A DNA stretch of 64,000 nt from Laetmonice hystrix (Eukaryota): positions 23,994,001 to 24,058,000 of the forward strand of contig OZ249448.1 of the NCBI GenBank assembly GCA_965235115.1, in the 5' to 3' direction. Positions 306 through 33,809 of this stretch are shown piece after piece (the first letter of the stretch is position 1; each line of letters starts with the position of its first letter). The notes under the pieces are model-generated. The model saw only the letters and a list, made by a program, of their open reading frames with translations. It did not search any database and was not told the origin of the DNA. The translations under genes and the position numbers were made by a program.

Positions 306-3300
306 CTGGTGGATGTGGAGATCCTTACATAATGACCCCCAACAGGAATGGAAATGATGGATCCCGGAGATCAGCATTCACAACATTAGAGGCATGTAAA
401 AGAGCTTGTCGCATTGACACAGCATGCATGGCTCTAGACTTTGATACGAGTATATCAGGCGGATGCTTTTTCTTCACGGATGCCAATTATGTACTGCAAT
501 CCACATACCAGGCTACCATTAACCATTACAAAAAGAAGCCAGAATGTGGAGGAGGTACCACAGGAGGTAAGCTGTAAAATTTCTTAGTGATGTTGACATT
601 AATTTTCCCTTTGTAAGGCTAAAAACGACAGTGCCTCTGAAAGAAGGGCTTGAATTAAAATGTGTTTTGATGATATTTACATCGGGACAGGGTAAAGTTT
701 CTATTAAAGAGTACACTTTACTAAATTTATACATGACAGAGAAAAAGTAATTTCTTCCCCTCAGACCTAATGTTATTTTTTAGGGGAATGGCAGATCTCA
801 CCAATTTAATTACTCAATTACTTTCTACCAATGGTTTGAGAGGACTTTTGAAACCATAGAAAAAATACAAGCAATCACCGTTTTCAACCCATAGGGCAGC
901 TGCATTTAACTTGCAACGTCATAACACAGTGCTGCAAGATAAAGTTAGCGCCACAGAAAACGATATCTAGACATATAATTTGTTTCTAGCTGGTGGATGT
1001 GGAGATCCATACATAATGACCCCGAACAGGAATGGAAATGATGGATCCCGGAGATCAGCATTCACAACATTAGAGGCATGTAAAAGAGCTTGTCGCATTG
1101 ACACAGCATGCATGGCTCTTGACTTTGATACGAGTATATCAGGTGGATGCTTTTTCTTCACGGATGCCAATTATGTACTCCAATCCACATACCAGGCTAC
1201 CATTAACCATTACAAAAAGAAGCCAGAATGTGGAGGAGGTAGCGGTACCACAGCAGGTGAGCTGTAAAGACTTTGTTGGCCTATGTTGACATTAAGCTTC
1301 TCTTCATTAGATGCCGCTGTGCCTATGAAAGCAGGACTTCGATTGAAACAATTGCTTTTCAAATATTTTTAACATATTCAACATATTAATACGAAAGACT
1401 GCATATTGCTTTGTTGAGAATGAAAGAAAGTCTGGGCGCATTATGACCAATATCTTTTATTAGGAGAAGGCCTGAGGGGAGATTTGAACCTTACTGTCAT
1501 TACTTTCTACCAATGTTTTGATAGCCATTTCAAAAAGATGGGGAAAAATGAAAGGTATCCTCGTTTTCAACTCATCAACCAGCAGTATTTCACTTGGAAC
1601 TGAGTAAAGCAGTACTGCAAGATAAAAAGACCACCAGAAAATGATAGCTAAGGGTACAGATTCACGGCAGTGACAAAAGTATATTGGATTGTAGCTGGTG
1701 GATGTGGAGATCCTTACATAATGACCCCGAACAGGAATGGAAATGGTGGATCCCAGAGATCAGCATTTACAACATTAGAGGCATGTAAAAGAGCTTGTCG
1801 CATTGACACAGCATGCATGGCTCTAGACTTTGATTCGAGTATATCAGGTGGATGCTTTTTCTTCACGGATGCCAATTATGTACTCCAATCCACATACCAG
1901 GCTACCATTAACCATTACAAAAAGAAGCCAGAATGTGGAGGGGGTACCACAGGAGGTAAGCTGTAAAATTTCTTAGTGAGGTTGACATTAATTTTTCCTT
2001 TGTAAGGCTAAAAATGACAGTGCCTCTGAAAGAAGGGCTTGAATTAAAATGTGTTTTGAGGATATTTACGTCGGAACAGGGTAAAGTTTCTATTAAAGAG
2101 TACACTTTACTAAATTTATACATGACAGAGAAAAAATATTTTTTCCCTGCAGACCTAATGTTATTTTTTAGGGGAAAGGGAGATCTCACCAATTTAATTA
2201 CTCAATTACTTTCTACCAATGGTTTGAGAGGACTTTTGAAACCATAGAAAAAATACAAGCAATCACCGTTTTCAACCCATAGGGCAGCAGCATTTAACTT
2301 GCAATGTCATGACACAGTGCTGCAAGATAAAGTTAGCGCCACAGAAAACGATATCTAGACATATTTGTTTCTAGCTGGTGGATGTGGAGATCCATACATA
2401 ATGACCCCCAACAGGAATGGAAATGATGGATCCCGGAGATCAGCATTCACAACATTAGAGGCATGTAAAAGAGCTTGTCGCATTGACACAGCATGCATGG
2501 CTCTAGACTTTGATACGAGTATATCAGGTGGATGCTTTTTCTTCACGGATGCCAATTATGTACTCCAATCCACATACCAGGCTACTATTAACCATTACAA
2601 AAAGAAGCCAGAATGTGGAGGAGGTAGCGGTACCACAGCAGGTGAGCTGTAAAGACTTTGTTGGCTTATGTTAACATTAAGCCTCCCTTCATTAGATACC
2701 ACTGTGCCTATGAAAGCAGGACTTCGATTGAAACAAATGCTTTTAAAATATTTTTAACATATTTAACATATTAATACAAAAGACTGGATATTGCTTTGCT
2801 GAGAATGAAAGAAAATCTGGGCGCATTAGGACCAATATCTTTTATTAGGAGAAGGCCTGAGGGGAGATTTGAACCTTACTGTCATTGCTTTCTACAAATG
2901 TTTTGATAGCCATTTCAAAAAGATAGGGGAAAATGAAAGGTATCCTCGTTTTCAACTCATCAGCCAACAGTATTTCACTTGGAACTTAGTAAAACAGTAC
3001 TGCAAGATAAAAATGACCACCAGAAAATAATAGCTAGGGGTACAGATTCCCAGCAGTGACAAAAGTATATTTGATTGTAGCTGGTGGATGTGGAGATCCT
3101 TACATAATGACCCCCAACAGGAATGGAAATGATGGATCTCGGAGATCAGCATTCACAACATTAGAGGCATGTAAAAGAGCTTGTCGCATTGACACAGCAT
3201 GCATGGCTCTAGACTTTGATACGAGTATATCAGGCGGATGCTTTTTCTTCACGGATGCCAATTATGTACTGCAATCCACATACCAGGCTACCATTAACCA

Positions 3301-6300
3301 TTACAAAAAGAAGCCAGAATGTGGAGGAGGTACCACAGGAGGTAAGCTGTAAAGACTGTGTTGGCTTTCCTAGTAAAGACTTTGCTTTGCTGAGAATGAA
3401 AGAAATGACTGATCACATTAAATTCAGTGTATGTTTTTACCAGAAGGAGGGAAGCGTTGACCTTTTACCATAAGTGCCATCATTAATTTTTACCAATGTT
3501 TTGAGAGTCATTTCGAAGACATAGGGAAAATGGAAGCTGTCTCCGTTTTCAACTCATAGGCTAGCTGTATTTCACTTGGAACTTCGTAAAGCCATATTGC
3601 AAGATAAAAACGACCACCATACAATGGAAGCTAGAGCTACAGATTCCCAGCAGTGACAAAAGTTTATTTGTTTTTAGCTGGTGGATGTGGAGATCCATAC
3701 ATAATGACCCCCAACAGGAATGGAAATGATGGATCCCGGAGATCAGCATTCACAACATTAGAGGCATGTAAAAGAGCTTGTCGCATTGACACAGCATGCA
3801 TGGCTCTAGACTTTGATACGAGTATATCAGGCGGATGCTTTTTCTTCACGGATGCCAATTATGTACTGCAATCCACATACCAGGCTACCATTAACCATTA
3901 CAAAAAGAAGCCAGAATGTGGAGGGGGTACCACAGGAGGTAAGCTGCAAAATTTCTTAGTGAGGTTGACATTAATTTTTCCTTTGTAAGGCTAAAAATGA
4001 CAGTGCCTCTGAAAGAAGGGCTTGAATTAAAATGTGTTTTGAGGATATTTACATCGGGACAGGGTAAAGTTTCTATTAAAGAGTACACTTTACTAAATTT
4101 ATACATGACAGAGTAAAAATATTTTTTTCCCTGCAGACCTAATGTTATTTTTTAGGGGAAGGGAGATCTCACCAATTTAATTACTCCATTACTTTCTACC
4201 AATGGTTTGAGAGGACTTTTGAAACCATAGAAAAAATACAAGCAATCACCGTTTTCAACCCATAGGGCAGCTGCATTTAACTTGCAACGTCATAACACAG
4301 TGCTGCAAGATAAAGTTAGCGCCACAGAAAACGATATCTAGACATATTTGTTTCTAGCTGGTGGATGTGGAGATCCATACATAATGACCCCCAACAGGAA
4401 TGGAAATGATGGATCCCGGAGATCAGCATTCACAACATTAGAGGCATGTAAAAGAGCTTGTCGCATTGACACAGCATGCATGGCTCTAGACTTTGATACA
4501 AGTATATCAGGTGGATGCTTTTTCTTCACGGATGCCAATTATGTACTCCAATCCACATACCAGGCTACCATTAACCATTACAAAAAGAAGCCAGAATGTG
4601 GAGGAGGTAGTGGGACCACAGCAGGTGAGCTGTAAAGACTTTGTTGGCTTATGTTGACATTAAGCTTCCCTTCATTAGATGCCCCTGTGCCTATGAAAGC
4701 AGGACTTCGATTGAAACAATTGCTTTTCAAATATTTTTAACATATTCAACATATTAATACGAAAGACTGCATATTGCTTTGCTGAGTATGAAAGAAAATC
4801 TGGGCGCATTAGGACCAATATCTTTTATTAGGAGAAGGCCTGAGGGGAGATTTGAACCTTACTGTCATTACTTTCTACCAATGTTTTGATAGCCATTTCA
4901 AAAAGATAGGGAAAAATGAAAGGTATCCTCGTTTTCAAGTCATCAGCCAACAGTATTTCACTTGGAACTTAGTAAAACAGTACTGCAAGATAAAAATGAC
5001 CACCAGAAAATAATAGCTAGGGGTACACATTCCCAGCAGTGACAAAAGTATATTTGATTGTAGCTGGTGGATGTGGAGATCCTTACATAATGACCCCCAA
5101 CAGGAATGGAAATGATGGATCCCGGAGATCAGCATTCACAACATTAGAGGCATGTAAAAGAGCTTGTCGCATCGACACAGCATGCATGGCTCTAGACTTT
5201 GATACGAGTATATCAGGTGGATGCTTTTTCTTCACGGATGCCAATTATGTACTGCAATCCACATACCAGGCTACCATTAACCATTACAAAAAGAAGCCAG
5301 AATGTGGAGGAGGTAGTGGGACCACAGCAGGTGAGCTGTAAAGACTTTGTTGGCTTATGTTGACATTAAGCTTCCCTTCATTAGATGCCCCTGTGCCTAT
5401 GAAAGCAGGACTTCCATTGAAACAATTGCTTTTCAAATATTTTTAACATGTTCAACATATTAATACGAAAGACTGCACATTGCGTTGCTGAGAATGAAAG
5501 AAAATCTGGGCGCATTAGGACCAATATCTTTTATTAGGAGAAGGCCTGAGGGGAGATTTGAACCTTACTGTCATTACTTTCTACCAATGTTTTGATAGCC
5601 ATTTCAAAAAAATAGCGAAAAATGAAAGGTATCCTCGTTTTCAACTCATCAGCCAACAGTATTTCACTTGGAACTTAGTAAAACAGTACTGCAAGATAAA
5701 AATGACCACCAGAAAATAATAGCTAGGGGTACAGATTCCCAGCAGTGACAAAAGTATATTTGATTGTAGCTGGTGGATGTGGAGATCCTTACATAATGAC
5801 CCCCAACAGGAATGGAAATGATGGATCCCGGAGATCAGCATTCACAACATTAGAGGCATGTAAAAGAGCTTGTCGCATCGACACAGCATGCATGGCTCTA
5901 GACTTTGATACGAGTATATCAGGTGGATGCTTTTTCTTCACGGATGCCAATTATGTACTGCAATCCACATACCAGGCTACCATTAACCATTACAAAAAGA
6001 AGCCAGAATGTGGAGGAGGTAGCGGTACCACAGCAGGTGAGCTGGAACGACTGTGTTGGCTTATTCCGATATTACTCTTCCCGTCATTGAAAACCACAAT
6101 ATCTATTAAATCAGGGCATGGATTGAAATAAGTACTTTTAGAATGTATTCAATGCAATCCAGTGTTGGCTTTCCTAGCAAAGACTTTGTTTTGCTGAAAA
6201 TGAAAGAAATGACTGATCACATTAAATTCAGTGGTTTTTTTTATTAGAAAGAGGGAAACATTTACCTTTTACCATAAGTGCCATCATTAATTTTTTACCA

Positions 6301-6749
6301 ATGTTTTGAGAGTCATTTCGAAAACATAGGGAAAATGGAAGCTGTCCCAGTTTTTAACTCATTGGCTAGCTGCATTTCACTTGGAACTTCGTAAAGCCAT
6401 ATTGCAAGATAAAAATGACCACCATACAATGATAGCTAGAGCTACACATTCCCAGCAGTGACAATAGTATATTTGTTTTTAGCTGGTGGATGTGGAGATC
6501 CATACATAATGACCCCAAACAGGAATGGAAATGGTGGATCCCGGAGATCAACATTCACAACATTAGAGGCATGTAAAAGAGCTTGTCGCATCGACACAGC
6601 ATGCATGGCTCTAGACTTTGATACGAGTATATCAGGTGGATGCTTTTTCTTCACGGATGCCAATTATGTACTGCAATCCACATACCAGGCTACCATTAAC
6701 CATTATAAAAAGAAGCCAGAATGTGGAGGGGGTAGCGGTACCACACCAG
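306..6749 (+). CDS. PAN/Apple-domain exon array, block I: 10 near-identical phase-1 exons
   Basis: Exons 306-566, 990-1256, 1695-1955, 2375-2641, 3081-3341, 3678-3938, 4358-4624, 5064-5330, 5770-6036, 6483-6749 (261 or 267 nt). Each has an AG acceptor and a gtaag/gtgag donor and encodes GGCGDPY...TLEACKRACRIDTACMALDFD...GGCFFF...NHYKKKPECGGG (6 Cys, C-x3-C-x5-C core typical of PAN/Apple). The ORF-track starts (MTKVY, MFLA) are intronic. Sequence 1-305 is a copy of the same intron, so the array continues upstream. Confidence 0.9.
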
Positions 6750-7135: not shown

Positions 7136-7387
7136 TTGGAGGATGTGCAGACCCGTACATAATGACTTCAAACAGAAATGCAAGGGATGGAATTCCAAAA
7201 CCAGCATTCAGAACATTAGTTGCATGCAAAAGTGCTTGCCGGACCGATGCAACATGCTTGGCACTCGACTTTGATACCAGCATATCAGCCGGATGTTATT
7301 TCTTCACAAATCCTAATTATCAACTTCAAACCATTTACCAGCCTAACATCAATCATTACAAAAAGAAGTCGGAATGTGGAGGTACAG
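7136..7387 (+). CDS. PAN/Apple-domain exon (variant)
   Basis: tttag acceptor and ACA G|gtgagc donor, 252 nt, phase 1-1. Encodes GGCADPYIMTSNRNARDGIPKPAFRTLVACKSACRTDATCLALDFD...SECGGT. Confidence 0.88.
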
Positions 7388-7620
7388 GTGAGCAAAACAT
7401 TTTGACGGGTTAACCAATCTTTGACCAGTATCTATTCTGTTGGTTACACACCTCACTACGTCTGAAGGTACTTGCAAGGAGCATTTTCAGTATTATCAAA
7501 CGTCTTGTACTGAGATGACATTTCAGATGACTGTATAAAAAGACTGCCTTTGTAAAGAGTTCTGTAATTTAGACAGACATTGAGGATTTCCAGCCGTGAC
7601 AAAGGTATGTTTCATTATAG

Positions 7621-7881
7621 CAGGAGGATGTGCAGACCCATACATAATGACACCCAACAGAAATGGAAATGGTGGAAACCGTCGACCTATATTCACAACA
7701 TTGGAAATGTGCAAAAGTGCATGCAAAACTGATAGTGGATGTTATGGTCTTGATTACGACACCAGAGCCAACACTGGGTGTTACTTCTTCACTAACTCCA
7801 ACTATAATATGGAAACAACTTACCAACCTACCATTAACCACTACAGAAAGAAAGCAGCGTGTGGGGGACCTGGTGGGACAG
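7621..7881 (+). CDS. PAN/Apple-domain exon (first copy of the NRRPIF type)
   Basis: ttatag acceptor and G|gtgagc donor, 261 nt. Encodes GGCADPYIMTPNRNGNGGNRRPIFTTLEMCKSACKTDSGCYGLDYD...AACGGPGGT. Confidence 0.88.
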
Positions 7882-8459
7882 GTGAGCTCATGAGAAATTC
7901 ATAATGAAGGACGTCAACGTTTATCATAATGAAGTTTTTATCTTTGAAAATATAACATCAGGCGGCAGCAGGCCCTGGGAGGCTCAGAAGTCATAAAGCT
8001 GTAACCAAACCTACTAATATCTGCATTGTCATATCAAAAGATTATTTTGTCGATAAGGTAAAATGAAGAATTGGCATTTAATTCTGAGTTTGGTGAGGTA
8101 ATTAGGAGGGGACATGGGTCGATGTAGTTGACCATGACAGATTAAAATATGCTGTCAAATACCACTGCTCTGCCTTACGACTGGACGGGGGATTACATAA
8201 AAGAGAAAGTTAAGGTCACAATTTCTTTGTTAGATTATTAGTTTACCTTAAGGAGCAGGCGTTTCAAAAGAGGGAAACACTTAGTATATGTTGTATGAAA
8301 GTTTATCTTAAAATGGCAGTAAACAAATGAAGAAGCATTGCATAAATGTATACACTGTGAAACTCTCCATACGATTGTCGGCCCAAGCAAAATAAGAAAT
8401 TCTAAGTCACGTATATGTTAAATTTCGTTGAAGACATATATCATTTTTCACTCTTATAG

Positions 8460-8711
8460 GATCATGCACAGACACATATGTTCCGTACAGTAAAACTAGC
8501 GGTAGCAATGGTGTCCTTCAAAGCGATATAGGAACAGATGCAGGATGCCGGCAAAGATGTTCAAGTAGAACATGTTATGGATATGAATTCAACGCCATTC
8601 GTAACGTCTGTCAACTTTACACTGTGGAGAACATTGTGATCAATAACTCAGGCGGGGCCCTTGGGGTAACACTGTACAAAAAGACCACAAATAATTGCAT
8701 CCCAAATTCAG
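8460..8711 (+). CDS. Divergent PAN/Apple exon inside the array (absent from the ORF track)
   Basis: ctcttatag acceptor at 8459 and TCA G|gttagt donor at 8712; 252 nt, open, phase 1-1. Encodes (G)SCTDTYVPYSKTSGSNGVLQSDIGTDAGCRQRCSSRTCYGYEFNAIRNVCQLYTVENIVINNSGGALGVTLYKKTTNNCIPNS, with all six PAN cysteines. Confidence 0.85.
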
Positions 8712-8931
8712 GTTAGTTCTGTCTTTATAATAGATAATTCTCAGAAACCTGACAATATATGCAATTATCTGCTTTTATTATCTCACTGTGCCTAAAATAG
8801 ACATTTCACCTTTATAGAGAATGTTCCTGCTGAAGTATTAATTTTAAAAGTTCCTGCATCACTTAAGATCATTAGAGTGAAGTGTGATCTATGACGTTTG
8901 ATATCATTTTGACTGAATCCTTCTACTGTAG

Positions 8932-11900
8932 AATGTGCAGATCCATACATCATGACTGCAAACAGAAATGGAAATGGTGGAAACCGTCGACCTATATTCA
9001 CAACATTGGAGATGTGCAAAAGTGCATGCAGAACTGATAGTGGATGTTATGGTCTTGATTACGACACCAGAGCCAACACTGGATGTTACTTCTTCACTAA
9101 CTCCAACTATAATATGGATACTACAAATCAACCGACCATTAACCACTACAGAAAGAAGGCAGCGTGTGGGGGACCTGGAGGTACAATTTTTACCCCTGGT
9201 CTGATCCACCAGATTTTGTCTCCACCTTATAAGCAGCCAAGCGTACAAGACTATACAGTTAGGGTAGTATATGGAAATGTAGTTGTGACTCAGGAGGGGG
9301 TGTTCGTGTGGGCCAAAGTAAGTTAAAAGCCATAGTTTAAAAGGAGTGTATTATATTCCCTTTCTTAACCTAATAAATTTAGATGAAAGAAACAAATTCA
9401 TGTATAAACTATTTTCTATGTATAGTTTTGATGATTCATTGCAGGCAGACATATATCTGTCTTATTTGCTTACTTATTATGGTATTAACTCCTATTTGTA
9501 GCTGGAGAATGTGCAGATCCATACATAATGACTGCCAACAGAAATGGAAATGGTGGAAACCGTCGACCTATATTCACAACATTGGAGATGTGCAAAAGTG
9601 CATGCAGAACTGATAGTGGATGTTATGGTATTGATTACGACACCAGGGTCAACACTGGGTGTTACTTCTTCACTAACTCCAACTATTATATGGAAACAAC
9701 TTACCAGCCTACCATTAACCACTACAGAAAGAAGGCGGCTTGTGGTGGACCTGGAGGTACACTCTTTTCTGTTCTGCTATGTCATTCTTTTGGAAAGAAT
9801 CAGCTCCAATATTTATTAAATTTGTTCGTGAAATAGGGGGAGGGATTATAGAGTTGAACCAAAGGAACTCTAAATGTCCCTCCAGGGGTTTACCTAGAGG
9901 GACATGGAAACATAGGTGCCACAGTCTTAAGTTACGGTATCTCAGGCCAAATTTATAAAGAATGACAATGGTTTCAATGTTTCTTTATAGCTGGAGAATG
10001 TGCAGACCCATACATAATGACTGCCAATAGAAATGGCAATGGTGGACTCCATCAGGCAGAACTCAGAACATTGGAGACGTGTAAAAGTGCATGCAGAGCT
10101 ATTAGTGGATGTTATGGTATTGATTACGACACCAGGGCCAACACTGGGTGTTACTTCTACTCTGACTCCAACTATAATATGGGAACAACCTACCAGGCTA
10201 CCATTAACCACTACAGAAAGAAGGCAGCATGTGGTGGACCTGGAGGTACACATTTCCCCTGATCAGATCTGACATTTTTTGTTTACATTGAACAAGCAGT
10301 CCGACTGGCAGGATTGTAACCAGTTACAGTAAAATATAAAAATATCACAGAAAACCAGGAGGGGTGGGGGGAATCAGGTGGGCAAAAGGAATTTGAAAAA
10401 CCACTGTAAAAAAATGGACCTGGGTTTCCTCTATCTATCCATAGAGATGAAAGGGGTTAATCCACGTTTAAACTACCCTACCATAAGTAGTTTTGACAAT
10501 TCATAATATGCGGACAGACTTGTCTTTATTTTGGGGATCTAACATAAAATACAAAGACTTATTTTGGTATCACTCTTCTTTATAGCTGGAGGATGTGCAG
10601 ATCCATACATAATGACTGCCAACAGAAATGGAAATGGTGGAACGCGGAGACCTATATTCACAACATTGGAGATGTGTAAAAGTGCATGCAAAAGTGATAG
10701 TGCATGTTATGGTCTTGATTACGACACAAGACCCAACACTGGGTGTTTTTTCTTCACTAACTCCAACTATTATATGGAAACAACTTACCAGGCTACAATT
10801 AACCACTACAGAAAGAAGGCAGCGTGTGGTGGAACCGGAGGTATGCTTTTCCCCGTTGTGCTCTGCCTATAATTCCTCTTCTTATTGTTCTTTCTTTCTT
10901 CTATAAAGTATAGCTTATCTGACTGGAAGGTTCATAAATAGAACGCCAGTGGCAAAGGAGATCAATGTGGTATCCGTTTACCTCTCTGTATAGCTGAACG
11001 AGATACAAGTTTCACCCATTAAAAGGTTCAGGATTTCATAGACGCCAAACAGAAACATACATGCTACAGCCTTCATTGATGCATCTAAGACGAAATGCAA
11101 AGATTAATTATAGCATCAACTCTTTTGTTTCTAGCTGGAGAATGTGCAGATCCATACATCATGACTGCAAACAGAAATGGAAATGGTGGAAACCGTCGAC
11201 CTATATTCACAACATTGGAGATGTGTAAAAGTGCATGCAAAAGTGATAGTGGATGTTATGGTCTTGATTACGACACCAGAGCCAACACTGGGTGTTACTT
11301 CTTCACTAACTCCAACTATAATATGGATACTGCAAATCAACCGACTATTAACCACTACAGAAAGAAGGCAGCGTGTGGGGGACCTGGAGGTACACACTTT
11401 TTTTCCTGGTCAGATCTTTTTTGTTTACATTGTACAAGCAATCCAACTGGCAGGTCTGTAACAAGTTGCAGCAGAGCTGCCTATTTGTCGCCATATGTCG
11501 CATTTTGGAGCGACAACAACGCAAATGTGATGAAAAAACAAAGTGCCAGATTGAATTAGGAACGCAGGACTATCTGTCGCATCATTGGTTTTGGAGATGC
11601 CCTAGTGATCCATGAAAGTCAAAGCACAGTAACGACGCATTTAATCTCTCGGGAGTAAGCGAAAGAGACAGAGAGTACCTTTTTGGGGTAAGGTTTGGCA
11701 GATTTGATTTTAATCCGAACAGATTATACTCGGACGGCTGTGTCCCAACATCTCTGCCACCTACTCTTACCCCCTTTCTTGCAAAATAGCTTTTATTATG
11801 CTGAGGTTGACAGTTTTGGTGCGCACATTTGGATGTGCTACACACTAAGCAGCCATAATTTTGGATAGCCCAGTACAGTAGAATATGAAAATATCACAGT

Positions 11901-13717
11901 GAACGGGGGAGGGGGGGGGGAGGGGGAATCAGGTAGGCAAAAGGAATTTGAAAAGCCACTTTAAAAAAAGATGGATCTGGTTTTCCTCTACCTTTCCATC
12001 GAGATGAAAGAGGTAAAAGTATGTTTAAGCTAGGTTTGGGTGATTCATAGACTGCAGACAGACGTGCCTTTAATTTTGGCTTTGGAAACTGGGTTTTCAC
12101 TTGTAGGTTTCCGTTATCCATTTCCGTTATCCCTTTCCAATTCGATTGTTTATACCTATTTTCTCATGCGAGCGTTTCCATGTACTTTTCATAGTCTGAT
12201 TATTCACGTGGAAATGCTACCATAGGAAATAGGCATAAACGATTGAACCGGGAACAGATAACAGAAATGAATAATGGAAACACATACATGGAACCGCGGG
12301 TTAACACAGAATATGAAGACTCATTATGGTATCAATTCTTCTTTATAGCTGGAGGATGTGCAGATCCGTACATCATGACTGCCAACAGAAATGGAAATGG
12401 TGGAAACCGTCGACCTATATTCACAACATTGGAGATGTGCAAAAGTGCATGCAAATCTGATAGTGGATGCTTTGGACTTGATTATGATACAAGACCCAAC
12501 ACTGGGTGTTTTTTCTTCACTAACTCCAACTATAATATGGAAACAACTTACCAGCCCACCATTAACCACTACAGAAAGAAGGCAGCGTGTGGTGGAACTG
12601 GAGGTACACTCTATCATTCTTTTGGGAGTAATCAGCTACAATATAAATAAAATGTGTGTGTGTGGGGGGGGGGGGATTACAGAGTTGAGCCAGAGGAACT
12701 CTAAATGCCAATGCAAAAAGGTATCTATATAATATCACATTATCTGTCTGTCTGCACATAGTAGATGAAAGAGCTAAAGTCATAGGAACATAGGTGCCAC
12801 AGTCTTAACTTGCGGCATCTCAGACCAAATTTATAAAGAATGACAATGGTTTCAATGTTTCTTTATAGCTGGGGAATGTGCAGACCCATACATAATGACT
12901 GCCAATAGAAATGGAAATGGTGGACTCCATCAGGCAGAAATCAGAACATTGGAGACGTGTAAAAGTGCATGCAGAGCTACTAGTGCATGTTATGGTATTG
13001 ATTACGACACCAGGGCCAACACTGGGTGTTACTTCTACACTAACTCCAACTATAATATGGCTACTACCTATCAACCGACCATTAACCACTACAGAAAGAA
13101 GGCAGCATGTGGCGGACCTGGAGGTACACATTTCCCCTGATCAGATCTGACATTTTTTGTTTACATTGAACAAGCAGTCCGACTGGCAGGATTGTAACCA
13201 CTTACAGTAAAATATAAAAATATCACAGAAAACCAGGAGGGATGGGGGGAATCAGGTGGGCAAAAGGAATTTGAAAAACCACTGTAAAAAATGGACCTGG
13301 TTTTCCTCTATCTATCCATAGAGATGAAAGAGGTAAATCCACGTCTAAACTACCCTACCATAAATAGTTTTGACAATTCATAATATGCGGACAGACTTGT
13401 CTTCATTATTGGGATCTAACATAAAATACAAAGACTTATTGTGGTATCACTCTTCTTTATAGCTGGAGGATGTGCAGATCCATACATAATGACTGCCAAC
13501 AGAAATGGAAATGGTGGAACGCGGAGACCTATATTCACAACATTGGAGATGTGTAAAAGTGCATGCAAAAGTGATAGTGCATGTTATGGTCTTGATTACG
13601 ACACAAGACCCAACACTGGGTGTTTTTTCTTCACTAACTCCAACTATTATATGGAAACAACTTACCAGGCTACCATTAACCACTACAGAAAGAAGGCAGC
13701 TTGTGGTGGAACTGGAA
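8932..13717 (+). CDS. PAN/Apple-domain exon array, block II: 8 exons
   Basis: Exons 8932-9180, 9502-9756, 9991-10245, 10586-10840, 11135-11389, 12349-12603, 12869-13123, 13463-13717 (249-255 nt, phase 1-1). Donors are gtacaa/gtacac/gtatgc, several weak. Same 6-Cys pattern as block I. Confidence 0.85.
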
Positions 13718-14015
13718 GTATGCTTTTCCCCGTTTTGCTCTGCCTTTAATTCCTCTTCTTATTGTTCTTTCTTTCTTCTATACAGTATAGCTTATCTGAC
13801 TGGAAGGTTCATAAATAGTTAGAACGCCAGTGGCAAAGGAGATCAATGTGGTATCCGTTTACCTCTCTGTATAGCTGAACGAGATACAAGTTTCACCCCT
13901 TTAAAGGTTCAGGATTTCATAGACGCCAAACAGAAATGTACATGCTACAGCCTTCATTGATGCATCTAAGACGAAATGCAAAGATTAATTATAGCATCAA
14001 CTCTTTTGTTTCTAG

Positions 14016-18647: not shown

Positions 18648-18831
18648 ATAGTGTGTATTATAGACACGTGCGACCACACAGTGTGTATTATAGACAGGTG
18701 CGGCCACACAGTGTGTATTATAGACAGGTGCGACCACACAGTGTGTATTATAGACAGGTGCGGCCACACAGTGTGTATTATAGACAGGTGCGGCCACACA
18801 GTGTGTATTATAGACAGGTGCGACCACACAG
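18648..18831. repeat. 30-bp minisatellite, about 6 copies
   Basis: Tandem unit cacagtgtgtattatagacaggtgcggcca. It explains the repetitive ORFs at 18480-18884. Confidence 0.95.
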
Positions 18832-20598: not shown

Positions 20599-21040
20599 CA
20601 GGGTTCGTAGCGGTCCTAGAAACCCTGGAAATCATGGCATTTGATAACCCATTTTCCATGAAAGTCATGGAAGTTTGCATCAGGTCATGGAAAGTCATGG
20701 AATTTGAAATTTGGGGGAAATCATTGCCTGTTTGGGAAAATGAAAAATAGGGACCCCAATTCTGGTTGCAGATTTGTTCATAAATAATTAATATAATGAC
20801 AAAGAATCTCAATGTCTTCTACCCTATCAGAGCCGTAGATAGAGAGCAAAGCGACCCCAAGTGAGTAGGGTGGGAACTACCCCCTTAGCGACTCTAGCGG
20901 TTATGCACTGCATAGCATCCACACTGGCTTATTCCCACCAAAACTTATAGCACAGCTAGTCCTGGAAAAAGATGACCAGGTCCTGGAAAAAGTCCTGGAA
21001 AGTCCTGGAGTTTTATTGTCATGAGAAGCTACGAACCCTG
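20599..21040. mobile_element. Non-autonomous DNA element (hAT-like MITE)
   Basis: 13-bp perfect terminal inverted repeats CAGGGTTCGTAGC...GCTACGAACCCTG, with subterminal short repeats (catggaaa, cctggaaa). No target-site duplication was found. Confidence 0.6.
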
Positions 21041-21423
21041 ACCGCTAGCGGGCCTTTTGTTGTAGGATGTCGTGTATTGTGTCAGCACTTGATACCCGTA
21101 AAATAACGAGTGACGTTTCCCCGACCTTCAGTCTGTTCTGACGATAGAGAACTCGCAATGGTAGAGCTGGCATACCACAGGCAATCTTTCGTCTCCCATC
21201 CTGACGACCCCATTCTATTCTAGCCATCTACCTTCGCTCTTCTCGGATTCCCCATCTGGTGTAGACATCGGTTTAGATGGTTCTGAATTCGTTTCTTGGT
21301 GCGAGTTTCCACAAAATCGACACACCCGCCTATGGCTTTAAAGTTAAATTTCTTTGTGCTGCTTACCAGATTGACTCAGTTTCCAAATTGCATCAGTTAG
21401 TGTATCATGCTTTATTTCTGCAG

Positions 21424-21441
21424 CGTCAAGTCCACAACCAG
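21424..21441 (+). CDS. 18-nt linker micro-exon (ASSPQP)
   Basis: tttatttctgcag|cgtcaagtccacaaccag|gtaggt; phase 1-1, open, Ser/Pro linker. Confidence 0.55.
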
Positions 21442-23075
21442 GTAGGTAATACATAGGTTGATATGATAGGATTTACCAGTTTCATGTAAGTGTATTCACA
21501 GACAATGAAGCGGGCCTGGACTAATCATCACTTTACTCCTAGGTAATAAGGATGGTATCGGCATCTTCTTTTGGTAATAAACGTAGCTGTACACAGATAT
21601 AAGTACCGCTAAGCATGTCGACTTTGTTCAAAACAGTTACACTTTGTGAAATGGAGAGTAGGGTTAAGTCTACAGTAGTGGGGTGTCTTGGAATGTCTTG
21701 TTGCTAATGGTAACGTGAACAAAAGGAAAGAGAGGAGATATTTATATATATCCTTGATGACCTGCTCAATCTGCTCGTCCGACTGGTAGATTGTTGGTGT
21801 TACGTTCAAGGAGTCATGTTCAGTCAGAAATCCGAACTTATATGTGACCAGAAAACATCTTCCAAGTTATTGCGGCAAATGTGCATTATTGATATTCTTT
21901 ATCCAAAACGTATTTCGGCAATATTTGGTTTATCGGTTAGGAACTCAGACATCCATCTCCTCATTTTTTGTCTGGCAAGCTCAGTATCAATCAAAAGTTT
22001 TATTATACAATTGTTACCGTAAGGGGGAGGGGGTTCCCTGTTCATGATTCGTAAACGGAACTTCGACCTACTACGTGTCATCTTGCGTTGAAAAGGTACC
22101 TTCCAGCATGGGCAATATGCATGTTTTTGATGGCAAATGTAGTTTTGAGTGTGATGGTCGATGCATTATGACAACAATGCCATACACATTAAGCATGTAT
22201 GAAGAACTTTGACTGTCATACGTGTTTTGAAGTTCCATAATACCATACAATTGGATTTTAAGGAACCTTGACTTCTTTGGCAACAAGAACAGCTAAGGAT
22301 TTCTAACAGTTGTTTTCCAGGATCAAGATATCTGTCAATGCGGAATTTATCGCCTTATAATGATATTGTCTGTTTTGCTTGTATAAACATCAGGAATGCC
22401 GTATTACTGGATTTTATTTTGTAATTCTATACACCAAAAATTGGGTCAAGTAGACCGTTTTCATTTGTATCGGTGGGTATGATTGTTTAAACTGTTGATC
22501 GTTGTCTTGGTAACATCCGACAACTTTGGGGCGGGGGGGGGGGGGTAAGGCATGTTGTAATAGGTGTGTAGATTTAAAAGGAGACGATCAAGATGGAATC
22601 AGAATTTAAGAATATACGATTAGCCCGTGCGTTTATTAATTTAGGACACGTTTCAGTTGTTCAGATTTTCTCGCTTACGGTTAAGTATACACAAAATCCT
22701 GGCGTTGTACTAGATTCGAGTGTTCATTTGTTTGATTCCTTAAAGGTAAAATATAGGAATGTGTAACCTTAAAGGCAAAATGTGAAGCGCCACCTAGTGA
22801 GTCGCGTTGGTACCACGGGGGAAATGTGAATATTCAAAGCGCCGCGTAGTGAGCTTTAACAGAAAAATGGTTGGCTTATTTATGCAGTCAACTACTTTGA
22901 TGTGGAAATCAGTAGTATTTTTTAAACCATGAGCCAAACTCTGTGCCAGAACCTGTCTACTCCAATGAATGCTATAGTTAAGACCCGTGGTTGACCTTAA
23001 AACACTAGAGACCTCAATATGGTAAAACCGTGAACGGCGGCCACATATTGACACTTGTCGGTTTGGTTTATGCAG

Positions 23076-23309
23076 CATGTCGGGACAACTACCGCCCGGT
23101 GAGGGACAAACTACGGCTAGGAGGTGTCGCCTACCCTCAGGGAGATCCATCCCCGGCTGCCTGCGAGAACGCCTGTAATGAAGTGAACGATTGCTACGGC
23201 TTCGACTACGACAGAGGGAGACGTGAATGTTTCCGCCATCTTGAGGCTTACGATGACTCGGAGCTACAGGACGGTTCCGGGGTGGATAACTATCGAAGGC
23301 TACGTGTCT
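23076..23309 (+). CDS. PAN/Apple exon
   Basis: tgcag acceptor and T|gtacgt donor, 234 nt. Encodes ACRDNY...AACENACNEVNDCYGFDYD...ECFRH...GVDNYRRLRV. The last Cys codon is split across the intron. Confidence 0.8.
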
Positions 23310-23805: not shown

Positions 23806-24033
23806 CCACGGGCTGCACAATATCGAAGGGCGCCGACGGTTTTTCTATTGGAGGGACGATCCGGGATACCATTAATACTGAGGCCGAGTGTGCCCGAAGT
23901 TGTCTGGCTGATGTCAACTGCATTGCCGTAGACTTCAACTATGCTGCACGTGGGTGCTACCACCACACGCAGGACGTAGTTCAAGATGTCCAGCCCAATT
24001 CCTGCTGTGCAAGATATGAGAAAACGTGCCCAG
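23806..24033 (+). CDS. PAN/Apple exon
   Basis: tttcag acceptor and CCA G|gtagac donor, 228 nt. Encodes TGCTISKGADGFSIGG...AECARSCLADVNCIAVDFN...GCYHH...SCCARYEKTCP. Confidence 0.82.
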
Positions 24034-24444
24034 GTAGACACTTGGTTTACATAACGTGAAACCCTGAAGTCTACCGGACCATGCAGATCGTGGTATATGA
24101 CATGTAGCAGGGACTAGGTGTCGGGAGAAGTCCAGTTGTAACGTCCTTCATTTGAAATATTCACGAGTTTTTTTTAGTAAGATACAGCTGAGTGTAAGTT
24201 TGGGGGAGGGGTCATAATTATCGGCAGGAATTAGGGACTACAGATTTAAACTCAGTACAGTTGACAAGTCATTGGGTACCTCGAGATATTGATGTTAGTA
24301 ATCCATACTGTAAGTAATCCATAGTTTTTAACGAAACTGTTTGGTATGTATACATGTCAGCCACCTTTACCAGAGCTGTTACTTATCTTTGCTGTACATA
24401 GTTAGCGGTACATAAAGGACTAAGACTGAAGAGTTTGTTTTCAG

Positions 24445-24666
24445 GGTGTGTCCCAAGATTCGTGAGACGAGAAGGGAGAAACGCGCAAGGCGGAGTGGAA
24501 CAGCCGGGTGTGGTCACCTTGGAAGGATGCAGAGCTTCCTGTATCAGTGCCGATTGTTTCATGTTTGACTACGATTCTGCCTTCAACGGTTGCTTCCTGC
24601 ACTCTCAGAACAGGACGTTGAACCCGGTGCAGGGTGTCGATAACTTTCTCTACATAACATGTAATG
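24445..24666 (+). CDS. PAN/Apple exon
   Basis: tttcag acceptor and AAT G|gtaggt donor, 222 nt. Encodes GCVPRFVRREGRNAQGG...EGCRASCISADCFMFDYD...GCFLH...GVDNFLYITCN. Confidence 0.82.
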
Positions 24667-24923: not shown

Positions 24924-24930
24924 GTGAGTT

Positions 24931-25520
24931 CTTTAGTGCAGAGTTTCCAGTGTGTCACTGTATTTAGTGCAGAGTTTACAGTGTGTCACTGTATTTAGTG
25001 CAGAGTTTACAGTGTGTCACTGTATTTAGTGCAGAGTTTCCAGTGTGTCACTGTATTTAGTACAGAGTTTCCAGTGTGTCACTGTATTTAGCGCAGAGTT
25101 TCCAGTGTGTCACTGTATTTAGTGCAGAGTTTCCAGTGTGTCACTATTTAGTGCAGAATTTCCAGTGTGTCACTGTATTTAGCGCAGAGTTTCCAGTGTG
25201 TCACTGTATTTAGTGCAGAGTTTCCAGTGTGTCACTATTTAGTGCAGAATTTCCAGTGTGTCACTGTATTTAGCGCAGAGTTTCCAGTATGTCACTGTAT
25301 TTAGTGCAGAGTTTACAGTGTGTTACTGTATTTAGTGCAGAGTTTCCAGTGTGTCACTGTATTTAGCGCAGAGTTTCCAGTGTGTTACTGTATTTAGTGC
25401 AGAGTTTACAGTGTGTCACTGTATTTAGTGCAGAGTTTACAGTGTGTCACTGTATTTAGTGCAGAGTTTACAGTGTGTCACTGTATTTAGTGCAGAGTTT
25501 CCAGTGTGTCACTGTATTAG
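24931..25520. repeat. 31-bp intronic minisatellite, about 19 copies
   Basis: Tandem unit tttagtgcagagtttccagtgtgtcactgta, starting just after the 24923 donor. Confidence 0.95.
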
Positions 25521-25734
25521 GTCTAAGCCCAGGAGCCTCGTCCGTTTGGGGCCAAGCGTGAATACGGCATAGATACTGAAATCGGATTCATATATTGACA
25601 ACTATGTATCGATTAAAAACGTCAACTCCTCAACGTTAAAACTAATTCCTAACCCGACACGTGACCAGAATCCAATATACCTTCCCATTGCAGTCCTTTT
25701 GACGTGTATTCACAGATAAACTGGTTTGTTACAG

Positions 25735-26004
25735 AATGTCCCAACAAGTTTGTAAAGAATGCCAACCAGCACGCTCTAGGCGGCAACGAGCAGTCCGACG
25801 TCAGGTCTCTGGATGAGTGTAAAGTTCTATGCGAGGAGAGGTCAAATTGCGTGGCCTTAGATTATGACAGGTCAGCACGTATGTGTTTCCATCACTTCAA
25901 CCCGCAGCTTCAGCTCCAATCAGCAATTGGGGTGGACCACTACAGACTGGAGAGATGTGACCTAGTGACAGCCATTCCAACAGTGACACCTTTCCCAGGC
26001 CAAG
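25735..26004 (+). CDS. PAN/Apple exon with Thr/Pro tail
   Basis: ttacag acceptor and CAA G|gtaaca donor, 270 nt. Encodes ECPNKF...DECKVLCEERSNCVALDYD...MCFHH...GVDHYRLERCDLVTAIPTVTPFPGQ. Confidence 0.85.
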
Positions 26005-26254: not shown

Positions 26255-27165
26255 CCTGTCGAATCGACATAACCATCTTCATCGATACAACCCCGGTGAG
26301 CCCCAATCTTCAGGGCCAGAATTACAACTTTGAAGTAAGAAGGATGCTAAACACGATCGTGGACGGCGTCACCCTCAATCCCAACTTTGTACGCATCGCA
26401 TTGGTGATATTTAACGACCAGGCCACTCCGTACGCTGTGTTTTCGGTGAGTGCAGCGACTTATACCGACTTGTGACTGGTATACCGACTTATGACTGGTA
26501 TACCGAGTGTTGTGACTGGTATACCAAGTGTTTTTATTTTAATTTTATGTTGATTTCTTGAAGTTCTTGATTTGCACAGATCGATGAACTTAATTGTTTG
26601 TGCATCAGATTGGCGTCATCATTAGTAAATTTGGTGTTGTAGTAGTAATGGAAGTGTAGTAGTATTGGAAACGTTTGTCTAGCGGTCATCTTGGACAACA
26701 GGTGTCATTTAATTTGTTCTGAGACCGTTTGATGTTATCTCCTGCAGTCTTATCCTTTGCCGAGCGACATAAAGCCGATCATCAACCAGATTGACTTCAC
26801 GGTTTCCGACCGGAGACCCCGTAACCTACCGGCCGCCTTCGGGTTGTGGTTCAGTCAGCTGCGACGACTAACTCCACAAGATGTTCGTTCTCTCATCTTG
26901 ATCATTACTCACGGGCCAACGGATGGCAACTTCCGTAATGACCTTCAGACCCAAGTCCAACAACTCAACAGATTACAGCGCCGGCCCAAGGTCACCATCG
27001 TCGGCATTGGTCAGTCGGGAAGTCAGGAGTGGCAGGGCCTGGCGACGCCTCCGCTCTCTGAAAACCTATTCATTGTGCCCTCGGTACCACGGCTTAATGA
27101 TGTGACTAGTCAGGCCCTGAGAGCCACCAGGTGTGATTCGTTCCGTGTGATCGCACGGCCGTCTG
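26255..27165 (+). CDS. VWA domain 1, split over two exons (26255-26445, 26748-27165); degenerate MIDAS
   Basis: Exon a encodes ACRIDITIFIDTTPVS...VRIALVIFND...VFS and ends at a phase-0 gtgagt donor. Exon b encodes SYPLPSD...LILIITHGP...VTIVGIG...LFIVPS...ATRCDSF and ends at a phase-1 gtgagt donor. The strand pattern matches VWA. Confidence 0.78.
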
Positions 27166-29322: not shown

Positions 29323-29955
29323 AATGTATTGCCGATATCACCATGGTGACAGATAATTATGGAGTCGTGTTGTCAAGTGTCACAACCTTCATCAAAGCCA
29401 TCATTGATAGGTTAAAGATTGGTTTCCTTAGCAACCGTATCGCTCTGGTGACCTCTGGCAGCATGCCAATGCGACGTTTTGACCTTGACGATTTCATGAC
29501 CAAGCCAAGCCTTAAGCGTGCAGTCGACGAACTTCAGTACGACTCCGGCCAGGTCAACATTCCAATGGCATTGCGACAGGCAAGAACAAATGTCTTTACT
29601 CCAGCAAATGGCGACAGAGCTTTGATAAAGGACGTGCTACTTTTAATCGCCGATGAAAAAATAGAGTCTGGCGTGGAACTGCTTTATGAAGAAATCACAA
29701 AGCTCAAGAATAGAGGTATTGCAATAGTGGGAGTCGGAGTCACAGACAAGGTCGATGACAATCAGATGAAGCTTATAGTCAGCAGCCCGGCAAGTCAAAA
29801 CTTTTTCAAGTTTTCTTCGTTTGCTGAACTCTCTAGTATTGTTGAAGACGTGTCAGCAAGCTTCTGTAGTGTCATACAGCCAATCGAAGAATCCCCTCCA
29901 TCGCCCACGCCAACCTCTACCTCAACCACCACCTTATCAACACCAAGCACTATAC
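29323..29955 (+). CDS. VWA domain 2 with Ser/Thr/Pro tail; degenerate MIDAS
   Basis: tttcag acceptor and ATA C|gtaagt donor, 633 nt. Contains CIADITMVTD, RIALVT, GDRALIKDVLLLIADE and GIAIVGVGV motifs. Confidence 0.88.
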
Positions 29956-30593
29956 GTAAGTATCATGAGGGCAAGTTACAAAATCCTAAAGAAAATATTA
30001 ATCTGATCATTGTGAATCAGCAAACATCATTCCTTGCGAGCAGTTTAACAACTTAGAGGACAGCTGGCTGTATATTTAGTAGACATGTTTGTAAGACTAG
30101 TTATTACATAATACGAGTAATGCCCTATTCGAGTGTATAAGATTCTGTTAAAGTGGACGAGGCGGCAAAAGTAGGGGCTAAAATGACTAACTAACCAAAT
30201 GGTCCATATAGCATAATTAAAGATCCACCAAACAACGAACGTTCGGTGTGGAATCGATGAAAGTGCCCTTCTTAACACCATCCATGGTCACACTGTCGTG
30301 TTCTTCTGCCGGTATGACGTCACAATTCTAGAAGCTCTCCTAGGTAGAAGTATGACGTCATCGCAGGAACCCTTGCCCAGCGACAAGCAAGTCTTGCTAG
30401 CACAGCGTAGTTGAAATCATTATTTTGATCAAAATGCATTGACATGGAAGGCCAGTAAAACTAACGTAAGGTCGATGTTGTAGGCCTAGCTCGGCTAGAT
30501 CAATAAAAGTGGATGTGTGTTGTCTGTTCGCTTTTAAGTCTGGCCTGCAGTATGGCATGCATGCTGACAGAAATGAGCATTATTTTCTTGCAG

Positions 30594-31035
30594 CCTGCAT
30601 GCTAGATTTCGCCTTTGTTGTGGATGATTCTGGCAGCATCTGAAAGAGCAATGTTGATGGTCAGTCCGACTACTGGAATACGATAAAGTTATTGATTATA
30701 GGCGTGATTTATTCTATAAATATCGGTGGGTGGAAAACTATAGGGTGGACGTTGTTAGGTTCAGCAATTAGGGCAAGCTTCAGTTTGACCTGAACGATTG
30801 CTGGAAGGCTGCACGGATGGAATGACAATACGGGAAACGGAAGGCCTGCATAATGAGGCAGAGAAAAATAAAAAGGCGCGCACAGTGATTATAGTGGTTG
30901 GAGTGACCCCGTGACCCCGCAAGTTTATGACGAGGATGTGAAACAGGTGGTGTGGTCGCCAACCTCTGACCACGTGCGAAAATCCTCTGACCTCTGGTCC
31001 ATCGCGGAACATCTCACCCAATGATCCTGCACAGA
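30594..31035 (+). pseudogene. Decayed VWA pseudo-exon
   Basis: ttcttgcag acceptor, then ACMLDFAFVVDDSGSI* (TGA), a frameshift into RVDVVRFSN*GKLQFDLND, a large deletion, and IIVVGVT...QVYDEDVKQVVWSPTSDHV. The last segment is colinear with the next VWA exon (TIIGVGVTSQIDDNQLKQIVTSPPSDHV). Confidence 0.8.
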
Positions 31036-31284: not shown

Positions 31285-31854
31285 CCTGCAACGTTGCTGA
31301 CGTTGTTATTTTGTTGGATGACTCTGGTAGCATTAACGACGGGGGTTCAGATAACTTCAACACTCTCAAGACCTTTGTGAACGCCATTCTGAATTCCTTC
31401 GTTATCGGTCAGCAGAAAGTGCAGATTGGCTTGGTGACATTCAGCAACAAAGCATTCGTCCAGTTCTATCTCCTCGATTACTCTGACAAGACCACGCTCT
31501 CCTTTGCTGTTGATAACGTTCACTATAACGGTGGCAACACCAACACCACTGGGGCGCTCCGAGTTGCCAGAACGCTGATGTTTACTGCATCCAAAGGAGA
31601 CCGTCCTTCCGCTGCTGACGTCATCGTACTGATAACTGACGGCAAGGCGACACGCGAGTTGAACGGCCTACTCGGGGAGTCCCAGAAAATCAAGAATCGA
31701 GGCATCACCATAATCGGGGTTGGCGTCACGAGCCAAATCGACGACAACCAGCTGAAGCAGATCGTGACCTCCCCACCTAGCGACCACGTAGTTCGTGCTG
31801 AAAACTTCGATCAACTCAGTGGCCTCGTCAGTGAAGTGAAAAGTAGTATTTGTC
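31285..31854 (+). CDS. VWA domain 3, intact MIDAS
   Basis: ctttcag acceptor; contains DDSGS...GGNTNT...ITDG. The 3' end is uncertain: either a weak phase-1 donor TGT C|gtgcag at 31855 or read-through to the stop at 31892. Confidence 0.85.
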
Positions 31855-33189: not shown

Positions 33190-33809
33190 CAATACCGCCG
33201 CGACCCACCATAAGGCCACCTCCCGTCAATTGCATTGGGGACATTGTGTTTATTATGGACTCGTCTGGTAGCATCAACGATGCAACCCAGTTCGGAGTGG
33301 ACAATTGGAAGGTGATTCTTCAGTTCGCCAACATGCTGATCAGTAATCTAAACGTCGATCGTGACAAGACATGGATAGGCGTGGTCCGTTTCAGCAACAA
33401 GGCCGACGTGCCGTTTGACTTCAACAGGTACCGGGGTGACCGTAGGGCAATCCTGGACGCGGTCTTACGGATCCCGTATGACGGCGGTAACACCAACACA
33501 ACCGGTGGATTCCGGATTGCAAGAGAACAGGTGTTCAGCCGGCGCGGCGGTAACCGGCCCAACGTAGCCGACATCGCTATCGTCATCACGGACGGCAAGC
33601 CTACGGTCGACACCAACAGGCTGCCAGAGGAGGTGTTCCTGCTGAGGAGTCAACAAGTGGCCCTTATCGGAGTAGGCGTCGGGCCGTCGGTGGACAACGT
33701 GCTCCTGTCTAGTATTTCTGATCATCAGTTCCACGTGGACGAGTTCAACCAGCTGCGAGACTTGGTCCAGGAGATCATTGATAGATCGTGTGCAATAGTC
33801 AAACGATAA
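33190..33809 (+). CDS. VWA domain 4, intact MIDAS; terminal exon of the PAN-VWA gene
   Basis: ccttgtag phase-1 acceptor, Pro-rich linker IPPRPTIRPPP, then DSSGS...GGNTNT...ITDG, ending RSCAIVKR and TAA. Confidence 0.9.

Follow-up and report, generated by a model that had tools for sequence, protein, structure and literature searches.

Introduction

PAN/Apple modules are domains of about 80 amino acids that carry six conserved cysteines, paired C1-C6, C2-C5 and C3-C4, and that fold as one helix packed on a curved antiparallel sheet. Tandem copies of the module serve multivalent extracellular binding of proteins or glycans in factor XI and prekallikrein (four apple domains), Toxoplasma MIC4 (six) and Eimeria MIC5 (eleven), and Drosophila NompA and C. 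elegans LET-653 are multi-PAN proteins that also have a ZP domain. Among annelids, the PAN domain of leech antiplatelet protein (LAPP), a secreted protein of blood-feeding leech saliva, binds collagen (PMC7191736). Here we describe a locus of Laetmonice hystrix in which at least 32 PAN exons in series are followed by four VWA domains. It occupies positions 306-33809 of the forward strand of the 64-kb stretch of genomic DNA that was analysed (contig OZ249448.1 of assembly GCA_965235115.1, positions 23,994,001 to 24,058,000; hereafter the window), 306 being the first splice acceptor and 33809 the last base of a TAA stop codon. Judging from its sequence, the product of the locus is probably a giant secreted protein, or two such proteins, with a role in adhesion or matrix.

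Among solved structures the closest relative is LAPP, the best sequence match in the PDB for a profile of the PAN units (1i8n, E = 5.6e-4; fold comparison by template modelling (TM) score, 0.72/0.67). LAPP is a single domain, whereas the window holds its domains in a long series and their binding is a prediction. The characterised multi-PAN proteins have far fewer repeats and none of them places VWA domains after PAN domains, while the window has neither a protease nor a ZP domain. The VWA block is most akin to collagen VI alpha3 and to the mussel byssal proximal thread matrix protein 1 (PTMP1), proteins whose tandem VWA domains bear metal-binding MIDAS motifs and which organise collagenous matrices, but in the window this block comes after a PAN array. 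No collagen triple helix, coiled coil, EGF or matrilin-type module was found by Pfam in the exons of the gene model, in two downstream open reading frames (ORFs) of C1q type or in selected further downstream ORFs.

Single-domain exons of the PAN/Apple array

The DNA of the window is eukaryotic, with a G+C content of about 40% and short introns. When the translations of ten PAN exons were used as tblastn queries, exactly 32 PAN-like segments were returned, all of them on the + strand between 308 and 26003; the - strand and the other 38 kb of the window gave none, and the long introns held no additional decayed PAN exons. Seven divergent units, starting at 16942, 17369, 17898, 23076, 23806, 24406 and 25669, lie outside the type B array, and the exons are arranged as follows:

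306-6749, + strand: ten near-identical type A PAN exons, with introns of 336-446 nt
306-566, 990-1256, 1695-1955, 2375-2641 and 3081-3341, + strand: type A PAN exons 1-5
3678-3938, 4358-4624, 5064-5330, 5770-6036 and 6483-6749, + strand: type A PAN exons 6-10
7136-7387, + strand: transitional PAN exon, 69% identical to type A
7621-15689, + strand: thirteen type B PAN exons
7621-7881, 8932-9180, 9502-9756, 9991-10245, 10586-10840, 11135-11389 and 12349-12603, + strand: type B PAN exons 1-7
12869-13123, 13463-13717, 14016-14276, 14488-14748, 14959-15219 and 15429-15689, + strand: type B PAN exons 8-13
8460-8711, + strand: divergent PAN exon inside the type B array, phase 1-1, donor CAG/GTTAGT (the slash marks the splice boundary here and below)
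16942-17205 and 17369-17626, + strand: divergent PAN exons 26 and 27, both phase 1-1
17898-18130, + strand: PAN exon 28, PAN_1 score 27 bits, followed by TAA at 18131-18133
23076-23309, 23806-24033, 24406-24666 and 25669-26004, + strand: divergent PAN exons 29-32, all phase 1-1

The exons share a common design. In the 24 canonical units the first and last cysteines span 78 amino acids, and the exon measures 249-267 nt and is always a multiple of three, so that both of its boundaries are phase 1. Every canonical unit has an acceptor made of a pyrimidine tract and tag/CTGGTGGA, and the donors, all in phase, read GAG/GTAAGC, CAG/GTGAGC or GAG/GTACAC. Phase-1 acceptors are found in all 32 PAN exons, the divergent exons used in the spliced model are likewise phase 1-1, and each exon retained in that model is a multiple of three nucleotides. 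After splicing, the junctions read GGGTTGAGGCGD and GSGTTAAGGCGD, and also GGGTTGAGGC or GSGTTAAGGC; two variants of the type A linker, GGGTTG and GGGSGTTAG, alternate along part of the array. An initial annotation of this DNA, made from the letters alone, had described 32 one-domain, phase-1 PAN exons joined by Gly/Thr linkers. The tblastn count and the in-phase splice sites agree with that description, and the linker it quoted is read at the spliced junctions.

The assignment of the array domains to the PAN/Apple family, which that annotation had also proposed, is supported by a Pfam profile and by a predicted fold. All 25 distinct units matched PAN_1 (PF00024) at E<=0.01, the best at 5.1e-7, and their alignment contains five invariant cysteine columns and a C-terminal cysteine that is imperfectly aligned, which is the six-cysteine apple pattern. 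An AlphaFold model of one unit, computed with its paralogues as the alignment, reached a predicted local distance difference test (pLDDT) value of 89.8. The 50 top fold matches of this model in the PDB were almost all PAN/apple domains or close kin (TM 0.6-0.72) and included the N domain of HGF, the plasminogen PAN domain, LAPP (1i8n), SML-2 and factor XI. After LAPP, the solved relatives that rank next for the PAN profile are the HGF N domain, which binds heparin, and MIC4, which binds galactose.

Nearly all type B exons (7572-15712) are also open in a second + frame (LPTEMEMVETVDLYSQHW...) and in antisense, over about 95-120 amino acids. These additional frames repeat with the units and have no family match, and base composition, not the presence of overlapping genes, seems to account for them. 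Two short-period repeats were seen in non-coding parts of the locus: a 30-bp minisatellite in six copies at 18650-18831, within the gap 3' of exon 28, and a 31-bp tandem repeat in 19 copies at 24932-25518, in an intron among PAN exons 29-32.

VWA domains and the spliced model

The PAN array is followed on the same strand by four intact VWA domains, as the initial annotation had stated, and additionally by a decayed fifth copy. Only two of the four, VWA3 and VWA4, have a complete metal ion-dependent adhesion site (MIDAS):

26255-26445 and 26748-27165, + strand: VWA1, two exons separated by a phase-0 intron, MIDAS degenerate (DTTPV)
29323-29955, + strand: VWA2, 94 bits, MIDAS degenerate (TDNYG), donor TAC/GTAAGT in phase 1
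about 30590-31020, + strand: decayed fifth VWA pseudo-exon, in the intron between VWA2 and VWA3
31285-31854, + strand: VWA3, 144 bits, MIDAS intact (DDSGS ... T ... TDG)
33190-33806, + strand: VWA4, 123 bits, MIDAS intact (DSSGS, TDG), followed by TAA at 33807-33809

Scored separately against the VWA profile (PF00092), the two parts of VWA1 reach 20.8 and 22.0 bits, both slightly below the cut-off of 23.8, and cover profile positions 1-53 and 72-173. VWA2 ends in a Thr/Ser/Pro-rich, mucin-like linker, VWA3 has a phase-1 donor directly past its terminal cysteine, and VWA4 ends in IIDRSCAIVKR followed by the TAA. The closest solved structures to VWA3 are collagen VI alpha3 (E = 8e-81, summed over two aligned stretches of chain), PTMP1 (4cn8, E = 5.7e-37) and integrin I domains. 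In the decayed copy the DDSGS motif is still legible, but at least two frameshifts and one or more stops interrupt the reading frame; at a similar offset, a relative has a VWA ORF of 182 aa that is intact.

With the stop-containing exon 28 left out, 36 exons splice into 10,502 nt encoding 3,500 amino acids with no internal stop, ending in SCAIVKR and the stop at 33807-33809. The length of about 3,500 residues foreseen for such a product is thereby borne out; the model has a mass of about 382 kDa and contains 196 cysteines. In one relative, the ORF corresponding to VWA4 (P0275) is 63% identical and has the same last eleven residues, IIDRSCAIVKR, and the same stop position. With tail and stop conserved in this way, the stop at 33807 is taken as the real, predicted end of the coding sequence. 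The order of the region is also kept in this relative, where three VWA-matching ORFs (with a weaker VWA fragment upstream) and then two triple-C1q ORFs follow one another on one strand at similar spacing.

Growth of the array and selection

Duplicated blocks of the array, introns included, are 94-99% identical, and the expansion is therefore recent, with one to three units duplicated at a time. Bases 1-1967 are 95% identical to 1377-3353, a three-unit block at 9903-11394 matches 12781-14275, and a 470-bp tandem array extends across 13974-15697. Since each unit consists of a symmetric phase-1 exon and an intron, changes in copy number preserve the reading frame. Base 1 of the window falls within one of the repeat units, and an extension of the array beyond the upstream edge of the window is therefore very probable, as had been proposed.

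Within the duplicated blocks, mismatches amount to 2.9% in exons as against 3.3% in introns, and indels to 0 in exons as against 12 nt in introns. The ratio of nonsynonymous to synonymous substitution (dN/dS) is 0.067 between paralogous type A exons, at dS 0.078, and 0.24 between paralogous type B exons, at dS 0.29. These sequence comparisons support the view that the PAN exons are under purifying selection and that their frame is kept open. The locus is in this respect a clean example of exon-shuffling design, in which symmetric phase-1 single-domain exons have been amplified by recent tandem block duplication and yet remain under purifying selection.

Relatives of the locus

A search with the PAN-unit profile against 1.84 billion representative proteins gave 3,538 matches. 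Many of these are very large multi-PAN proteins. The largest count, 54 stretches matching the profile, was seen in P0003, a single called ORF of 5,928 aa from ENA on a contig of 689,925 nt. The best matches among named proteins were six "Apple domain-containing" proteins of Helobdella robusta and one protein each from Dimorphilus, Octopus and a dinoflagellate. Further domains seen in other multi-PAN relatives are fn2, SUEL-lectin and F5/8C.

The nearest precedents for the architecture are Helobdella T1FVV8 (HELRODRAFT_194269, "VWFA domain-containing protein"), annotated with about 21 PAN domains, a VWA domain and three C1q domains, and P0030, an uninterrupted ORF on a contig from a sequencing run that encodes a signal peptide, eight PAN domains, a VWA domain and three C1q domains. 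A third protein, P0001, has 17 PAN domains and three C1q domains. In T1FVV8 the annotation places the start methionine within a PAN domain, and no fewer than six further PAN domains are encoded upstream of it (KB097650.1), in part assigned to a separate gene of 676 aa; the public model is thus a truncated version of an array that has at least 27 PAN domains. In the Helobdella gene, each PAN domain has a phase-1 exon of its own that encodes about 90 aa; one exon supplies the Thr-rich linker, and another supplies most of the three C1q domains. T1FVV8 and P0030 thus resemble the window in placing a long array of PAN domains ahead of VWA, and in Helobdella these domains are likewise encoded by single phase-1 exons. 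Unlike the window, they combine a single VWA domain in one ORF with a Thr-rich linker and with three C1q domains, whereas the window has four VWA domains and a decayed one and a stop before its C1q ORFs. Identity between the window and T1FVV8, P0030 or P0001 is low, at 25-45% per domain.

It had been suggested that no characterised animal protein has this architecture. The architecture search leaves that statement standing for characterised proteins, and literature searches for PAN combined with VWA, with or without C1q, which covered annelids, molluscs and also adhesive secretions, brought up no such protein that has been characterised; uncharacterised precedents do exist in T1FVV8 and P0030. 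The locus adds a further member to a family that is rich in annelid proteins and still uncharacterised, and does not represent a new kind of protein; it is set apart by its unusually long array and its four VWA domains. It documents at the level of exons a family of giant multi-Apple extracellular proteins that is best represented, among named sequences, in annelids, and whose PAN arrays are split by public annotation, as T1FVV8 shows.

Downstream triple-C1q exons

Two further long exons follow on the + strand, 2.3 and 5.1 kb 3' of VWA4, each encoding about 400 amino acids in a compatible phase:

36133-37307, + strand: triple C1q-like exon 1, phase-1 acceptor tttcag/AC, TGA stop
38927-40107, + strand: triple C1q-like exon 2, Pfam C1q 38 bits, phase-1 acceptor, 27% identical to exon 1

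C1q exon 1 gave no Pfam C1q match above thresholds and no similarity to named proteins in a word-based search. Its structure was predicted with a predicted TM (pTM) score of 0.86 and matched over its full length engineered single-chain trimers of C1q (5hkj, TM 0.79/0.77), Cbln1 and adiponectin; on this model, exon 1 is a natural single-chain, pseudo-trimeric gC1q head. Neither of the two exons has an in-frame start with a signal peptide. Scans of 33809-36131 and 37307-38927 gave candidate signal-peptide exons 5' of each of them, at 35571-35631 and 37873-37942, and such candidates occur at about the rate expected by chance.

Stand-alone secreted triple-C1q proteins are a known class, represented by the 444-aa HcC1qDC6 (PMC5519582) and by the "smultiC1q" proteins, whose genes are typically tandem duplicates (PMC6835236). 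The ORFs of the window resemble these bivalve proteins of about 400-445 aa in having three gC1q domains and in being paired (PMC5519582, PMC6835236). They differ in that signal-peptide exons of their own are candidates only and that the first ORF falls below the Pfam C1q thresholds. The two C1q ORFs are probably neighbouring genes, separate from the PAN-VWA gene. Continuation of the gene into a triple-C1q exon as its main form was at first favoured, given the phase-1 acceptor and the PAN-VWA-C1q homologues, and was downgraded by the identical tail and stop in P0275, the generic nature of the C1q similarity and the known stand-alone class. An earlier hidden Markov model (HMM) link between the C1q modules and the tails of the relatives was circular, as those tails were in the model.

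One product or several

Exon 28 is where the number of products is decided. It has a good acceptor and an intact six-cysteine domain and is among the best PAN_1 scorers, and it would be either a skipped or poison exon, or the exon with which the coding sequence of a PAN-only gene or isoform ends. Because the exon is symmetric, skipping it preserves the frame and yields the 3,500-aa protein. We lean towards a single long protein made in this way (at least 31 PAN and four VWA domains, 3,500 aa in the window), encoded by a genuine, selected locus and acting as a multivalent secreted cross-linker. Several observations weigh against it. Exon 28 has no in-phase GT donor and its TAA lies one residue past the last cysteine; the gap that follows directly 3' (18134-23075, 4.9 kb) exceeds every other intron of the locus, and in the model exons 27 and 29 are separated by an intron of 5,449 nt, all others measuring 163-2,157 nt. 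These features appear to fit a true terminal exon better than a skipped one. Lone PAN exons score 17-29 bits against a PAN_1 gathering cut-off of 21.4, some falling just under it, and several exons have more than one in-phase donor or acceptor, which leaves linker lengths uncertain. Searches for transcripts or proteins of this species with the triple-C1q and VWA4 exons returned only genomic ORF calls of one relative, the N-terminus and any signal peptide lie outside the window, so that secretion and the joining of all exons are inferred, and copy number in an array of 95-99% identical repeats hinges on the quality of the assembly. The initial annotation had treated the whole as one giant protein locus; the locus, its domains and the open 36-exon model stand, and it is the single product that is put in doubt by the exon 28 stop without a donor and by the 4.9-kb gap. 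A division into two adjacent genes is accordingly a serious contender, if short of an even chance: gene A would be PAN-only, with at least 28 domains and 2,415 aa in the window, and would end at the TAA at 18131, and gene B would comprise four PAN and four VWA domains (about 1,085 aa) with its own promoter and signal-peptide exon in 18134-23075. Besides exon 28 and the gap, this reading has on its side the PAN-only relatives P0004 and P0014, which terminate at the last cysteine of a PAN domain, and P0064, which also has one VWA domain and terminates two residues past the last cysteine of a PAN domain; shorter secreted PAN-VWA proteins exist as well, for example P0071, which has a signal peptide, and P0037, and a signal-peptide exon would need the phase-1 acceptor that exon 29 has. 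Yet no convincing signal-peptide first exon was found in 18134-23075, where combinations of an ATG, a signal peptide and a phase-1 donor occur at chance density, relatives hold long PAN arrays and VWA in a single ORF, and annotation of Helobdella readily split one such array into "genes". A scan for poly(A) signals past the three candidate stops gave a background of about one signal per kb. It is very improbable that the array is dead or artefactual, composed of unexpressed pseudo-exons or inflated in copy number by misassembly: one VWA copy is decayed, one PAN exon cannot be spliced onwards and repeats this similar are hard to assemble, but the 36 modelled exons are open with cysteine patterns and splice sites intact, dN/dS is far below 1, the exons are free of indels, the copies differ by 1-6% and thus are not identical assembly duplicates, and a diverged relative retains the order of VWA and C1q ORFs and, exactly, the VWA4 tail and stop.

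The 3' end of the gene can be weighed in the same manner. It is rather unlikely that the gene, or some of its isoforms, runs into a downstream triple-C1q exon to give a PAN(n)-VWA-C1q product with three C1q domains, the VWA4 stop and C1q exons 1 and 2 serving as alternative 3' ends. The acceptors of both C1q exons are in phase 1 and have good pyrimidine tracts, neither exon has an in-frame signal-peptide start, three independent proteins combine PAN, with or without VWA, with three C1q domains, and the order and spacing of VWA followed by two triple-C1q ORFs are kept in the relative; the Thr-rich linker of VWA2, with its strong phase-1 donor, also resembles the linker that precedes C1q in P0030 and P0002. 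On the other side, the VWA4 stop and the eleven residues before it are perfectly conserved where overall identity is 63%, the sole in-phase donor within VWA4 (T/GTGCAA at 33789) is weak and disrupts the codon of the last cysteine, and the C1q modules of the window, compared with the C-terminal ones of the relatives, have only a generic similarity to P0001 and P0002 (E 1e-3 to 1e-4) and do not match P0030 at all. The existence of a stand-alone triple-C1q class with tandem genes and the candidate signal-peptide exons 5' of each C1q ORF also speak for separate genes. Less likely still is one transcription unit with combinatorial use of phase-1 exons, in which the PAN array would be capped by the exon 28 stop, by the VWA3-VWA4 end, or by either C1q head reached through the Thr-rich linker of VWA2. 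If true, a single gene would produce a set of giant adhesins or recognition molecules that differ in their "heads", and this would also account for the single PAN-VWA-C1q ORF of the annelid relatives. Any joining of the C1q heads would link adhesion modules to a complement-type recognition head.

Predicted function

If exon 28 is skipped as we favour, the long product would end at the 33807 stop, while use of exon 28 itself would end a shorter, PAN-only product. The protein would be secreted and would act as a multivalent cross-linker of collagen- or glycan-rich material such as cuticle, tube, mucus or basement matrix. Each PAN unit may bind a glycan or collagen-like ligand weakly, and dozens of units in series would confer high avidity. 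VWA3 and VWA4, with their complete MIDAS, could bind acidic ligand residues through a metal ion, drive assembly, or both, as in collagen VI, integrin I domains and PTMP1; VWA1 and VWA2, in which the MIDAS has been lost, are more likely structural or metal-independent. Ligands, tissue and secretion are predicted here by analogy, and the earlier reading of the locus as encoding a multivalent adhesive, matrix or recognition protein is reasonable on the strength of its PAN and VWA domains. If it is indeed a constituent of cuticle, tube, mucus or glue, the protein could be of interest to biomaterials research as a candidate cross-linker with many binding sites.

The main functional rival to a matrix cross-linker is an immune agglutinin, in which the same structure would serve as a humoral pattern-recognition or agglutinating protein of innate immunity. 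The genes nearby, two triple-C1q ORFs and a fibrinogen-related gene, belong to lectin-type immune families, the PAN domains of MIC4 and SML-2 are galactose lectins, some multi-PAN relatives carry SUEL-lectin or F5/8C domains, and recent tandem expansion is a feature of immune families. We nonetheless regard this role as fairly improbable: the paralogous units are under purifying, not diversifying, selection (dN/dS 0.07-0.24) and ten of them are almost identical, the VWA domains are closest to those of the matrix proteins collagen VI and PTMP1, and some relatives carry the collagen-binding fn2 domain.

Other features of the window

Beyond the C1q exons, the window contains the following features:

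45858-46322 and 47242-47598, + strand: claudin/PMP22-like four-pass membrane protein, two exons, Claudin_2 E about 1e-5
49510-50186, - strand: gene with a fibrinogen-related domain (FReD), two exons, Fibrinogen_C 92-94 bits
54236-55349, + strand: NTMT1 (N-terminal Xaa-Pro-Lys methyltransferase), two exons, at most 75% identical to any database protein
62721-63005, + strand: exon of a phosphatidylethanolamine-binding protein, PBP 46 bits

With the FReD gene and the C1q ORFs, the surroundings of the locus are rich in immune gene families of lectin type. In a tree, the NTMT1 of the window falls outside Mollusca and groups with ENA sequences. At 53015-53171, 157 consecutive N mark an assembly gap or a masked stretch. 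An ORF at 60858-61211, near the phosphatidylethanolamine-binding protein exon, has no family match and may belong to the same gene.

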